NCBI GenBank assembly: GCA_977016875.1
Contig: CDRNST010000013.1
Span: forward strand, 496,001-560,000
Length of the DNA stretch: 64,000 bases
Direction: 5' to 3'
Source: Pavona decussata
Taxonomy: Eukaryota
Below the pieces are notes generated by a model. That model was not told where the DNA came from and made no database searches. It worked only from the letters and a program-made list of their open reading frames with translations. Numbering within the stretch: position 1 is the first letter of the stretch; each line of letters begins with the position of its first letter. Positions 29,708 to 35,559 of the stretch are shown piece by piece. The position numbers and the translations under genes are program-made.

Positions 29708-30256
29708 CTAGGTCTGCCAATGTTGCAGCATATTCAACACTGACTGCCATTCGGAACCCCTTCCATGTTCCACAAAAATTGCCCGCAACTTCCCTATGAG
29801 GGAGTCCACAGTCCCAAAGGCCAGTCTCTTAGGACATTGACAAACACCCTGGCCAACTCTCTGATGTGAGAAGTTTGGGCACTCTAAAAGGTGAACCTGT
29901 GTTTTCCCCCCATGATCTTTCCAAACTAGAAAAGCTATCACATCTGCTGGGAGAGCTGAAGCCAGGGATTTTGGAGTTGCAAGATTATGCAAGAATATAG
30001 AAAATTCCCGTTCTAGAGCACTCTTTTGTTTGACATAACGCGAGGATCCCCGCTGTTGTGATAACTGATCCAAACGCTGAGCAATGTTTTCCTCATCAAT
30101 CTTGACTTTCTTGGCTTGCGGTACGATCTCGGAAACATAAGCACCACCCCTGGTATAGCCACATTGCTGACAAAACCGAAACTGCTCATCATTGGCATGA
30201 GAGCATCTAGGACAAGCCACCGACAGAGTAAAGAGCTTCGGAACTCTAGGAAGCGG
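29708..30256 (-). pseudogene. Zinc ribbon + ALOG domain (recombinase N-terminal DNA-binding domain); catalytic YR core missing
   Basis: CPRC...FCQQCGY; FLVWKDHGGKTQVHLLECPNF...CQCPKRLAFGTVDSLIGKLRAIF matches the plant ALOG pattern GKTKVHxxxC...CxCPxRxAWGSLDALIGRLRA. Confidence 0.88.
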
Positions 30257-30294
30257 CTGTAAAAAAACAAAAAACGGGAAAATCACTCAAAGAA

Positions 30295-30732
30295 TCAAAA
30301 CGATACTTTACAAGCCCAAAGATTAAACGGACAAGGCGCTGGTTTATAGCCAGACTTGGACGGTGCCAGAAGGACTCTGAAACTACCCTTTGTACCAAGG
30401 CAAACTTTAGAGGAAGAACGAGCCATCAGCTCAGTCCACCAAAAAAGGTGTGGACAGATCTCTGGGACGATAACGGTGAATGGGATCTGGAAGCCATACA
30501 AAAACCTCAAAACTGGACCAACTGATCCAAAGGGAGGGAAAACATATGGATTAGACATATTGGACATTGCACGCAAATTGTGAGAAAATAAATTGACGCC
30601 TCGCAAACGTGGACTTGAAAAAGGTGTAAAGCGTGGCAAAGGGCTTCCATCCAATCCAATTACCACATTGGAATCCAAGGCCATAAGGTCAAATGAGTGC
30701 CCACATGTGCCCCCAAATGATTGTTTCACCAA
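30295..30732 (-). pseudogene. DNA N6-adenine methyltransferase-like domain at the end of pol
   Basis: HSFDLMALDSN...GVNLFSHNL...NPYVFPPF, the xPPF motif of DIRS methyltransferase-like domains. Confidence 0.7.
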
Positions 30733-32534
30733 GGCCCATCCCCTAGCAGAAATTTTGAATCTGACTTTGACAAGCGACTTGAAGGACCATCTGCCTGGTT
30801 GTCACTAGACTTGACATGGAACAGGCTAAGCTGAAAATTGCGATATAATAGCGCGTAGAACAGGTCCTTAGAAGCCTTGGTCAATTGAGGGGACTTCTTA
30901 CTCCCTTGGCCCTCCCAAACGCCAATAAGAACAGTACTGTCAACATAAACATCAACTTGACAATCCCTCAAACTAGCGGGAAGAGCTTTTATGGCGTTTA
31001 CCAAAGCGAACATTTCTTTGGTAGAGATGTTGAGATCCCTGTGTTGCTCATCCCAGTAGTCACTTATAGTTTGTTCACCGGAGGGCAGATGAACGACACA
31101 ACCCCAGCCATGTCCCGAAGCGTCCGTAGACAAAGTCAGTCCTACGTGCTTCTCTTCTCACCATGGAAGACACTTCTGCCAAGAGTCTAAAAAACGCCAA
31201 TGCGTCAATTCTTCTCACAAGGCCAATGAGATCGAAACAAGACCATTCGCTGATGCAGATGCAATTGCTGAACTCATTTCTCTTATAAACAACTTGGTCG
31301 CAGGGACCGCCAATGAGAACGACACACATTTTCCTTAAAAACGCAAATCCACATATTTCTTACACGCCAAAATGTGCTCTCTCAAAGATGCCCAGGAAAC
31401 AATCTTCCGTTCCGGCACTAGGAAAGATTGCTTTGCAGAGTCCACTACAAGACCCAAGTACTCCAGTGAGGTAGTGGGGATGAAAACCGATTTACTAATA
31501 CCAATTGTGTAACCTAAATAAACGAGGACTGATAAGACACAAAATATTGCGGCAGTCGCTGCGTCACGTCTAAGTTGCTCCTGTCAACATGCCGGGAGGA
31601 CTGACCATGGCCCTGATGAGGTGAGGAGTTCACCATTAAGACGTCGTCTATATACAGTGAACAGGGAACACCTTGAGCTCTTAAGAAACTGGACGCTGCC
31701 AAACCTATGGTATGGTAGATGTAGGGGGAAATTTTCCATCCAAATGGAAGAGTACCACAAACAAACCAATAACCCTTCCATTCAAAACCAACATATGTCT
31801 GAGAGCATGCAGAGAGTAACACATGATCATAACCTGACTTGTCGTCGCATTTTGTCATGTAGGACCCCCTATAGACATAACTTGGAACATCGACTAATTT
31901 ATCCAGGGAAAAAAGGCATATCCCTCATCCACAAGTTCAAAAACCTAGCATCTAGGCAGAGTCTTGGTTTCATGGGTTCTACTGTTAATGGTAAAACCAA
32001 ATGAGGTGGACTATCAACCACGAGTTTCCCCCACACCCTAACTGCTCCGGTAATCGTTCGCTTCAAAATTTCCTACGACACAAATTCTGTAAATCTTTTA
32101 CATGACCCATGATTTGGAAATCGCTTTTGTGGCGGAAAGTCTGAGCAATAATTAAACCCGTTATAAGCACCCTTAAAAGGTTGACTAAAATGCCTAATGT
32201 TCACTTTATTCCGGATCCAATCACTGATTGATGCAGCAAGCGGATGACCTTCAAGAATCAACTCCCAAGCTTCAAGATGCCTGTGGATACCTCCAGCAAT
32301 GAACTTGTCTTGATCTCTTAGTCTAATTCTTCCCAGATCTGGAACAGTTTCAGAGACTAAAACATCTTTCCAATTGTAGACACAAGATGCCTTTCCCCGA
32401 TCAGGAACCCCATTTACATTAACCCAAGATTCAAACGTTCTTGGTTGCGAAGCCGGAAGGAGAAAACCAAAATCCTGAGAAAATTCATTTTCACTAACAG
32501 GCTCTTGTAATCTTAGCTTCTTGAAAGGAGGACT
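30726..32534 (-). pseudogene. pol (RT + RNase H) of the ALOG element, frameshifted
   Basis: PHLVLPLTVEPMKPRLCLDARFLNLW; DDKSGYDHV...LPFGWKISPYIYH...LYIDD; TDASGHGWG...ISTKEMFAL...NQADGPS. Confidence 0.9.
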
Positions 32535-32846
32535 CTACAGGAAGAGACAAGAGAACAACCCCAAATCAACGAATGGAAAATGGTATGCAAATGGGGTTCC
32601 CGATCAGGAAGGAGTGACTTCACACGCCTGAAAACAGTACGTCAACTGGCCACCGAGATAATTGCGGTAAGCCAACAGGAGTCACTCGCCCCAATCTAGG
32701 AATTTTGAAAAAGAAAACAGAAAACTAGAGGGAAAACCCTGACGGACACAAATGAAAACACTGATATAGATGCTACAAAAAGCATACTTTAATAAATGGA
32801 AAAGAAAATGTGCACCGAGTCAGACAATAGCCATGACGTCATGTAT

Positions 32847-33341
32847 TTATTTTAAACTGTCCCGAACAAATCTCCCTCTCTTGGCGGGAGGTCCTGCAGC
32901 TTCCCCAAAGGCTTGTCGGCGATCCGGGCAGTAACTCTGATAGTGGCCAAAACGACGGCAATGGTAACACTGCACAGAACTGAAGGAATGGCCACGCCTT
33001 CTCCCAGGAACATGATTGAACCTAGGGGTAGACAACCTCATGGACTTATCCACTTTGGACATCATGTCCAACACCTTTTCTTGATCCTTGTCACCCAGAA
33101 TGACTTCCAGGTATTTCCTGAACTGGACATCTGGGGTCGCCGATTTCTCCCTCAGGGAACGGAACGCCGCATCAAAAAACCCTGCCCTAGGGTGATTCAT
33201 TTCCTTAGCAACCATCTTTAGATTAAGTAGAAGATCTAACGCCTGATCCTTGCTGAAAGATGTAGCCTGCTAATGTGGAATCCACAGAAGCCTTTTGGGA
33301 CTCCTCCAACCTTTTTAACCTCTGCAAAAGTTATGCCTCTC
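32847..33341 (-). pseudogene. gag-like ORF with CCHC zinc knuckle
   Basis: VQCYHCRRFGHYQSYCP. Confidence 0.8.
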
Positions 33342-33418
33342 CTAGAACAAGGAAATAAAATCACAAACCTTTAAGGCTAACTCTTTCTCCCTTTACTCTT
33401 AAGCCTCATAGTCTTTAT

Positions 33419-33708
33419 TAGCCACACAGGCAAATAAATCCCTTTAGCCACACAGGCACACCAGTCTTCGGCCGCACAGGCAAACTAACTTTAGCCACAC
33501 AGGCAACTAAATCTCTTTGGCCACACAGGCAAACCAGTATCTAGCCACACAGGCAATTAAATCTCTTAAGTCTCACAGGCAAAACAGTCTTTAATCACAC
33601 AGGCAAATAAATCTCTTTAACCATACAGGCAATTAAAACTCTCTAGCCACAGAGGCAGTTAAATCCTTTAAGCCTCACAAGCAAAACAGTCTTTAGCCAC
33701 ACAAGCAA
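33419..33708. repeat. Tandem array of 12 units (23-26 bp), core tagccacacaggcaa
   Basis: Counted directly; linkers mostly of two types, a(t/a)taaatctctt and accagtctt/aacagtctt, partly alternating. Confidence 0.92.
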
Positions 33709-33865
33709 TGGAAAGTCTAATATGCACAAAATCATTTAGATAATATATGTAACGGAATGTAAGAAACCGCACCTTCCTAAGAAAGAAAACCGAAACTTAC
33801 ACGACTACTCTTGGTGAAATAACGACACTAGAAATGGCCACTAATGAAGAAAAACTACCGTTTAC

Positions 33866-34033
33866 CTCAACAGCGTTCGCCGGATTAACAGGGAGATTTT
33901 GTTGACCTGCTTGACCTTCATTTGCTTGTTCAACTCTCTGGTCCGCCAAAGCCGCCACCGGCGGAGGGATGTCAACAGCCGCTGCCAAACCCGGGACAGG
34001 AATCTCCAGGCGATGTGGAACCTGGTCAGCCAC
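33866..34033 (-). CDS. Putative 56-codon leader exon of the ALOG element
   Basis: (GTG)ADQVPHRLEIPVPGLAAAVD...NPANAVE followed by GAG|GTAAAC donor, phase 0; start is GTG, possibly a mutated ATG. Confidence 0.5.
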
Positions 34034-35559
34034 AGAGTACAGCAAAAATGACAGGCGGAGAACACAGTCGAAGAACAGAGTCGAAGGACGCCGACGAAGA
34101 AGGCGGGTTTGCAGAAGAACACACGCCAAACAATCACTGACTGTGACTAGAGCAAAGTGCATTGAATAGAGCACATGTTTGTCTTTTATACATACATTAA
34201 TATTCATCCCCAGGGCATTAATTAACAATGCAAATTGAGTTTCCATAGTTTGTTTGTTTCTCCCCTGGCCTAAGGATAATTTAATCCAGCTACTTTTCCA
34301 TGTGGTGGAGCTTTATATAATAATATTCTATAAACCCTTCATCCATTTTGTTGTGGCACATAAAATATTATAGAATTTTTTTAGCGTTGTATCTCCCCCA
34401 AAGTAAAATAGCTCTTTTATTGATTATTCAAGGAAGCAGTTCAAGGAAGCAGTTATTATTCAAATGATGTGACAGTTCCTTCGAACTGTAATTTACATGA
34501 AATCGTAACCAGTGGTTTCTAGAACAGAAACAAATACATACACTGAAGCTAACGATCGATAACAAGAATAATGCGAGCAAAAGGCAAAAACAACAATATG
34601 AAAGGCAAACAGCGAAAGGACAATATAAATGTACCTGACAGTTTGGATACATGGAAACTTGATGCATTGAAGGAACAGATAAAAAACGAATTCCGGAAAA
34701 AACTTGGTTCACTGGTGGATGTAAGGAGTTAAGAGTTGAATTTGAGAAGCAAGAAAATTGTTTTTTGTTGTTCATCTCTCGTGAGAAAATCTTGACTTAA
34801 AAAGAGCAAAACTGTTGGCCACCAGAGCCTCTCATGAGGGACTACTTTTTAATTTAATTTCCCACCTCATGAGCGGTTTTTATCTTTTTTGGAGCGCTCG
34901 TTTTTTTTGTTTTACCCACTTTTCAAGGCTTCCCCTCCTCCACACCGCTCTTTTGAGCACCATCAGACTCCCTGATTGGAGCCAAGTTTTTTTAGTCACC
35001 GTCCGGGTTGAGGCTGAACAGGCACTTCTGCCAGGCGCCAGCCCAACCATAGCTCTACCTAACAGCCCGACACCATCTTAAGGCGACATTACTAATACTT
35101 AAGCCTATGGAATAAAGGCAGGGGTTTTTCCTTATTCCATAGGTGGATTTGTATTCAGTTCATTAACAAAAGGCCCCTGCTCCAATTAATTACTGTGAAT
35201 ACTTAGCCAGTTTATATCTCGACTCAACAACCTATGTATAAAACACAGTTTAAAAAATTTCACACTTGTGGTACAAATCATGAGAATCTTTTGTTTTTAT
35301 TGGATACGTATGCACAAATTTCACACAATAAAACTTTTTGCCTGCTTAATTTTTTTTTATTTGTTCAAATTAAAACGGAAAACGAATTTCTCGATTTAAA
35401 ACTGAAAGTAAGAGGACAAGGTTTATTCAATATTTTCACAAATGCAAAGTGAGATATCAGAAGCGAGCAAGCGCCAGAATTTAATTAAAAAAACACATTG
35501 AATTAATAAATCAAAGCAACGAAACTATTGTTCAACCTGCTCGTTCTTCTCTTGTTGAA

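Follow-up and report, generated by a model that had tools for sequence, protein, structure and literature searches.

One leader exon, three acceptors: a candidate splicing strategy in an ALOG-type tyrosine-recombinase retrotransposon of Pavona decussata and its relatives

The stretch of DNA considered here (64,000 nucleotides (nt) of Pavona decussata, assembly GCA_977016875.1, contig CDRNST010000013.1, positions 496,001 to 560,000; "the window" in what follows) carries, on its minus strand at 34249-29034, one copy of a PAT-like split-direct-repeat tyrosine-recombinase (YR) retrotransposon with an ALOG-type recombinase; no second copy of the element lies in the window. A short open leader is followed by gag, pol and the remnant of a recombinase gene, flanked by the split direct repeats (A1 ... 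B1-A2-B2) that are found in PAT-like and Ngaro-type elements (Table 1). The subject of this account is how such an element is expressed. Its three main open reading frames (ORFs) each begin directly behind a pyrimidine tract and an AG, without a usable ATG, and the leader that precedes them ends in a splice donor. The comparison of this copy with its relatives makes it probable that functional members of the group produce their three proteins by alternative splicing of one leader donor to three acceptors.

The terminal repeats are direct, not inverted, which places the element outside the DIRS1-like group in its strict sense. Pieces of the pol ORF match the Pfam models RVT_1 (1.7e-9) and RT_RNaseH (3.6e-7), that is, a reverse transcriptase (RT) together with RNase H; an intact relative (L004, introduced below) matches RVT_1 at 1.1e-7. 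The recombinase ORF matches ALOG_dom at 3e-27, with zinc-ribbon models N-terminal, and is in this respect of the ALOG type. The first-pass annotation of this DNA called it an ALOG/YR ORF, and its zinc ribbon and ALOG domain are indeed present, but the catalytic domain is not: about 730 nt, including that domain, are missing relative to the sister copy L001 (the homology break is at 29730/29729). The catalytic domain is present in L001 and in relatives (in L005, ALOG is followed by Phage_integrase, at 2.2e-6, in one recombinase), so that the family is nonetheless one of YR elements. Between RNase H and recombinase lies a conserved domain of about 170 amino acids (aa; 30801-30298 in the window) that has no Pfam match and no sequence match to solved structures; the label "inactive adenine methylase" for this C-terminal domain of pol rests on Iyer and Aravind (PMC3537659). 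A methyltransferase-like domain in this place would be the mark of PAT-like as opposed to Ngaro elements. The closest named relatives of the element are anthozoan (Oculina, Porites, Actinostola, Exaiptasia).

Coordinate arithmetic, together with translation exon by exon, gave the phase of each putative splice site. The leader stays open in frame up to its final codon (GAG, 33868-33866), which is followed directly by GTAAAC; the donor is accordingly in phase 0. The first base behind the pol tract opens a codon of the pol frame, in which there is no Met among the first 153 codons, and the first base behind the recombinase tract opens a codon of the zinc-ribbon/ALOG frame, in which the first Met is codon 176. 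Thus the leader would join both the pol and the recombinase acceptors in frame, as the first-pass annotation had proposed, and the positions that it gave for the 56-codon leader, its donor and the three tract-plus-AG boundaries stand up as well. Scored simply for their pyrimidine tracts, the three acceptors rank 7, 2 and 1 among the 336 AG sites of the element, far above chance. A reservation attaches to two of them: the AGs of the gag and pol acceptors of this copy belong to in-frame TAG stops, so that the opening of an ORF right after AG is, for gag and pol, partly trivial. Pyrimidine tracts and CAG-type sites, on the other hand, are not a trivial consequence of stop codons.

Table 1. Features of the element, in window coordinates; a slash marks the exon boundary of a splice site.
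Feature	Position	Strand	Remarks
A1 terminal repeat, 125 nt	34249-34125	minus	98% identical direct repeat of A2 (29311-29187)
TATA box TATAAAAG within A1	34190-34183	minus	probable promoter
Leader exon, coding part, 56 codons, Pro/Ala/Gln-rich	34033-33866	minus	open frame
Splice donor GT, phase 0 (GAG/GTAAAC)	33865-33864	minus	kept in eight families
Putative intron 1, 524 nt	33865-33342	minus	between leader donor and gag acceptor
gag exon with CCHC zinc knuckle; acceptor ...ccttgttctag/	33341-32847	minus	broken by two gaps relative to L001
Upstream helix arm, in gag-pol spacer	32610-32585	minus	ends 51 nt before pol acceptor
pol exon: N-terminal basic motif, RT, RNase H, 170-aa C-terminal domain; acceptor ...cttcctgtag/	32534-30295	minus	
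Downstream helix arm, in pol coding sequence (GVPD codons)	32419-32394	minus	starts 115 nt after pol acceptor
Recombinase exon remnant: zinc ribbon and ALOG domain; acceptor ...tttttttacag/	30256-29711	minus	
B1 repeat, 87 nt	29390-29304	minus	93% identical to B2
A2 repeat	29311-29187	minus	
B2 repeat	29120-29034	minus	

The window copy itself is dead and cannot express anything. Its leader opens with GTG, as had been noticed at the outset, where the sister copy L001 has ATG. (An out-of-frame ATG in the window leader, ATGAAGG, was considered as a start and dropped: it is not preserved in L001.) Compared with L001, two stretches, of 10 nt and 20 nt, are missing from the first 90 nt of its gag exon; it is these two gaps, and not the single-nucleotide correction previously invoked, that stand between the leader and a readable gag. 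The acceptor at 33341 shares its frame with the main gag ORF (33269-32850), but because of the gaps they are separated by a shifted stretch with a stop 8 codons past the acceptor. An alternative acceptor at 33321, in phase with the shifted segment, was likewise discarded: comparison with L001 and L004 makes 33341 the homologous site. The pol frame, finally, is interrupted by in-frame stops and several frameshifts.

Is the pattern, then, anything more than an accident of decay? A dead copy in which two of the three acceptor AGs are parts of in-frame stops invites the suspicion that TAG codons merely happen to lie behind T-rich stretches, and the way to deal with that suspicion is to look at relatives. 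These were collected by searching 1.8 billion representative proteins with the pol N-terminus and then looking up the loci of the hits. Eight families resulted (WIN/L001, L002, L003, L004=L005, L006, L007, L008 and L009), with pol identity down to about 45%; natural copies were compared, rather than a consensus. L001 belongs to the window's own family (94-95% identical) and has lost most of gag as well as the pol acceptor; L002 is a degenerate copy of another family; in the remaining six families the ORFs are intact, with 166-182 aa for gag, 747-753 aa, counted from the acceptor, for pol, and 436-452 aa for the ALOG-recombinase. (Two technical notes: intron 1 of L004 includes a run of N; and the L004, L006, L007 and L009 contigs, 6.2-6.7 kb long, are circularly permuted, with the leader after the recombinase, as is expected from assembly through repeated ends or of tandem or circular forms.)

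The leader ORF begins, in each of the eight families, with a Kozak-like ATG and a MADQxP-like start (L001 supplying the ATG for the window's family), and a TATA box is found approximately 110-160 nt upstream of that ATG in each of the seven families with upstream sequence, L008 lying too near its contig end to tell. The leader varies in length from 42 to 83 codons and its peptide is barely conserved; what is conserved is its end, a Glu codon followed by GTA in phase 0 (GAG/GTA in seven families, GAA/GTA in one). Acceptors could be located for pol and recombinase in every one of the eight families, and for gag in seven. At each ORF start examined the acceptor consists of a pyrimidine tract and YAG in phase 0, with the exception of two broken sites in the degenerate L002: its gag acceptor could not be placed in phase, and its recombinase acceptor is one base out of phase, although an intact relative (P0327) reads the latter site in phase. 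The gag acceptors of L003, L004 and L006-L009 lie, in phase 0, 6-11 codons before a conserved RRLKxLE motif. Everywhere the acceptors are within the top few percent of the AG sites of their element. The conservation of leader ATG, donor, acceptors and phase that the first-pass annotation had singled out for comparison among genomic copies is thus borne out across eight families, and donor and acceptor signals of compatible phase are present throughout, as for retrovirus-like splicing from one major donor.

The missing start codons tell the same story from the side of the proteins. In the six intact families the first Met of the recombinase ORF is found at codon 54-379, which places it within the zinc ribbon and ALOG domain or past them, and yet protein conservation begins precisely at the acceptor: invariant residues run from the second codon after AG (xLPxVxKLF..SV.CP.C), with none conserved upstream. 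For pol and gag the first Met is at codon 1-163 and 4-34, respectively. (Directly after the pol acceptor most families, i.e., the window's own at 32534-32505 and L002-L008, have a basic PPxKRxK motif that resembles a nuclear localisation signal.) A scan of JGI metagenome contigs added 35 further distinct recombinase starts, and 29 of these have AG at the same codon boundary, preceded by sequence with a mean pyrimidine fraction of 0.77, as against 0.52 for AG sites taken at random; the remaining six resemble mutated copies from families in which AG is otherwise present. Coincidence in one decayed copy is rejected by these comparisons, position and phase having been kept in eight families and dozens of loci while their surroundings diverge, and as an explanation it is now scarcely credible.

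If the three acceptors are real, what feeds them? Readthrough or frameshifting from gag into pol is ruled out because the pol frame does not stay open through the gag-pol spacer (313-390 nt), being closed right before the acceptor. Donors other than that of the leader might generate Gag-Pol and Pol-recombinase fusions of the kind made by classical retroelements, and there are gene models to encourage the thought: in P0102, P0116 and P0171, for example, gag is joined to pol, or pol to recombinase, and Iyer and Aravind (PMC3537659) observed, in metazoan models, a fusion of ALOG with the domain upstream of it. Nevertheless, cross-family comparison brought to light no conserved in-phase donor inside gag or near the ends of gag and pol. 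The phase-0 GTs of gag all belong to valine codons that are conserved, and their positions +3 to +6 vary (a candidate donor at conserved EK/V codons was dropped for this lack of donor consensus); close to where gag and pol end, GTs are either missing or out of phase. A short intron running from the end of pol to the recombinase acceptor was also tried and given up: it would be 55 nt long in the window and 54 nt in L001, restores the frame in neither, and is not conserved. Moreover, the frame of pol relative to that of recombinase differs among families. Feeding by other donors is for these reasons distinctly unlikely, and the donor of the leader is left, no alternative donor being supported, as the only conserved partner for three phase-0 acceptors. 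That pol and recombinase draw on it is suggested by phase and by the want of any other candidate.

Nor does the partner need to be encoded in cis, at least in principle. Some invertebrate lineages trans-splice, and an element with three acceptors and one visible donor could be imagined to be processed like a polycistron, with a host leader spliced onto each acceptor. Since the ORFs lack ATGs, an ATG in the right phase would have to come from that host leader. Every family, moreover, possesses an exon in cis whose ATG is conserved and whose donor is in phase 0, and the closest named hosts are anthozoans, which are not known to trans-splice. We regard trans-splicing as highly improbable.

The gag-pol spacer holds one more conserved feature. 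In the window the segment 32610-32585 is the reverse complement of 32419-32394, inside pol, and the two would form a helix that brackets the pol acceptor. A helix of 18-39 base pairs (bp) is found at this place in all eight families (z = 6-14 relative to shuffled sequences), its upstream arm ending 42-96 nt before the acceptor and its downstream arm starting 100-131 nt after it; nothing comparable is found at the acceptors of gag and recombinase, apart from a helix at the gag acceptor of L006 (z = 5.6). Among the five families with homologous arms, 87% of cells pair and four pairs show compensatory change, compared with 39-58% paired when the partners are slid along one another; a column-shuffle control of this pairing test, with only five sequences to shuffle, is not significant. 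In the other three families (L002, L008 and L009) arms of unrelated sequence occupy the same place. When the window and L008 segments are folded, the helix appears in the minimum-energy structure as well as in the centroid (z = -4.6 and -4.8 for the two segments). Conservation of the helix in the face of compensatory changes and unrelated arms therefore indicates that the non-coding upstream arm tracks the coding one. A likely function is to loop out the pol acceptor and in that way to tune its use.

The same helix can be turned into an argument for a different scheme, in which only the intron between leader and gag is real while pol and recombinase are translated, from RNA that is unspliced or spliced only to gag, by reinitiation, internal entry, initiation at non-AUG codons or a shunt across the helix. 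So strong a helix close to the pol start does recall the shunt structures of plant pararetroviruses. The scheme would also be at ease with the ATG found at the acceptor in a few families, and with the fact that spliced pol or recombinase RNA was not seen in the contigs and proteins searched. What it leaves without a purpose is the splice signal itself: a pyrimidine tract and YAG have no role in reinitiation or internal entry, and yet in eight families they coincide exactly with the codon at which conservation of pol and recombinase sets in, as they do at 29 of the 35 additional recombinase loci. Shunting would, in addition, skip the conserved basic motif at the N-terminus of pol, because the downstream arm lies 100-131 nt inside pol; and the first Mets of the recombinase fall within or past the zinc ribbon and ALOG domain. 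We consider this scheme unlikely, without thinking it far-fetched.

Splicing from the leader to all three acceptors has its own difficulties, and they are best listed together. 1) No database protein has the leader joined directly to pol or to recombinase, as judged by reading the N-termini of the proteins retrieved (with the pol N-terminus from the 1.8 billion representatives; with pol, recombinase and gag from a set of 5.8 billion proteins). Two short Logan contigs of a size appropriate to spliced recombinase mRNA turned out to be unspliced genomic fragments with the end of pol upstream, and the 80 metagenome contigs with a recombinase start are all unspliced. 2) In certain families an ATG coincides with an acceptor or lies close to it: L003 has one at codon 1 of pol (5977), L007 at codon 4 of gag (303), and the ELPVMAKLF recombinases (loci L035, L036, L043 and L051) next to theirs; the shared leader may therefore not be obligatory everywhere. 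3) Within the window's family the pol acceptor is known from the window copy alone, L001 having lost it. 4) The leader donor scores only moderately on a generic matrix. All of these weigh against the proposal. The first weighs less than it may seem to: the contig collections look mostly like DNA, so that absence of spliced forms from them is weak evidence. (Two gene models that do join leader to gag, P0051 and P0190, have odd junctions in degenerate copies and were not accepted as evidence for splicing.) The strategy put forward in the first-pass annotation, one donor and three acceptors, accordingly comes out of the comparison with its sites and phase conserved and without a competing donor, but with no spliced RNA or protein found to go with them.

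The mechanism that we propose for functional copies is the following. A single transcript would start downstream of the TATA box in repeat A; unspliced, it would be the template for reverse transcription. For translation, all three proteins would depend on one short 5' exon that provides the only conserved ATG and a Pro/Ala/Gln-rich peptide of 42-83 residues. The phase-0 donor of this exon would be joined, alternatively, to one of the three phase-0 acceptors, the products being leader-Gag, leader-Pol (with its C-terminal domain in addition to RT and RNase H) and leader-recombinase. In this way Pol would be made separately from Gag, with the ratio of the three proteins set by the choice of acceptor, and this choice is likely to be regulated by the conserved long-range helix, in which the pol acceptor would be looped out. 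Speculation that a whole clade of YR elements in marine animals makes its three proteins in this manner, from separate spliced mRNAs, with a common disordered leader peptide, a ratio set by acceptors and a co-evolving helix that gates the pol acceptor, is on less firm ground: we would give it an even chance of being right.

Several other features of the element and its surroundings deserve mention. AATAAA is present in both B repeats (B1, 29343-29338; B2, 29073-29068; minus strand), which fits formation of the transcript 3' end in B. The leader-gag intron of the window copy contains a tandem array of 26-nt units (33418-33708); tandem arrays are also found in the leader-gag introns of L002 (about 8300-9600) and L003 (3427-4129), and so in at least three families. 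The 5' untranslated region just after A1 (34111-34096) and the A2-B2 spacer (29166-29151), both on the minus strand, share 16 nt of perfect complementarity that recalls the internal complementary region of DIRS1; it is shared by L001, was not found in L003, and has been seen in the window's family only. An Rfam scan of the element gave only a chance, snoRNA-like match (E = 0.96). Elsewhere in the window, at 56997-57662 on the minus strand, lies an unrelated RT ORF (RVT_1, 1.3e-22) that is part of another retroelement at about 56-60 kb.

What would follow if the proposal is correct? The missing start codons of pol and recombinase ORFs in this group would be explained, and the recognition and counting of intact copies would change, since many ATG-less "remnants" may be intact. 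Retrotransposons would have a parallel to the subgenomic splicing of retroviruses, with even gag and pol spliced. The elements would offer a simple and testable system (one donor, three acceptors, a co-varying helix) for the balance between spliced and unspliced RNA. The leader may confer a shared function, such as localisation or assembly, on the three proteins. And an ALOG donor element would produce its recombinase as a separately spliced product, perhaps one that is easily captured as a stand-alone gene. YR retrotransposons are the least understood order of retrotransposons, and their gene expression is essentially unstudied. Shared-leader splicing in these elements, which the first-pass annotation did not know to have been described, is indeed not described in the openly accessible literature that was searched, and full-text searches aimed at it likewise brought up nothing.

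The closest relatives by content are the ALOG-type DIRS1-like retroposons of marine metazoans and Ectocarpus (PMC3537659), which have the same zinc-knuckle Gag, RT/RNase H, extra domain and zinc-ribbon/ALOG recombinase, and the same hosts, cnidarians included. In describing them, Iyer and Aravind (2012; PMC3537659) make no reference to introns or splicing, and read the metazoan copies as inactivated remnants; here, in contrast, several metazoan-type copies are intact, and their ORFs are read as exons behind a common leader. PAT-like and Ngaro elements share with the present ones the A1 ... B1-A2-B2 repeats and the order of gag, RT/RNase H and recombinase. Openly accessible overviews of PAT-like, Ngaro and DIRS elements speak of overlapping ORFs, rely on ORF finders that accept only ATG, and make no mention of splicing, whereas the ORFs compared here do not overlap, lack ATGs and start at acceptors.

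Partial parallels come from further afield. Foamy viruses make Pol from a spliced mRNA, apart from Gag and with an ATG of its own; in rice tungro bacilliform virus, ORF IV is spliced in frame to a short leader ORF that supplies its ATG. Neither is known to feed three ORFs from one leader exon. Among retrotransposons, Ty1/copia elements and BARE likewise use splicing to set the ratio of Gag to Pol, by way of spliced subgenomic gag RNAs; as reported (PMC5580714, PMC3735527), it is an intron within pol that is removed, so as to favour Gag, and neither a common leader exon nor a set of alternative acceptors figures there. The nearest known mechanism is that of avian leukosis and Rous sarcoma viruses, in which a 5' donor within the first coding exon is used with alternative acceptors, and the start codon is shared: in a vector based on avian leukosis virus (PMC8220723), six residues are common to Gag and the Env signal peptide, and there are two alternative spliced mRNAs. 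The avian retroviruses translate Gag and Gag-Pol from unspliced RNA and reserve splicing for env and src. In the elements described here, by contrast, gag and pol would themselves need to be spliced, the shared peptide would amount to 42-83 residues instead of six, and the third product would be a recombinase.

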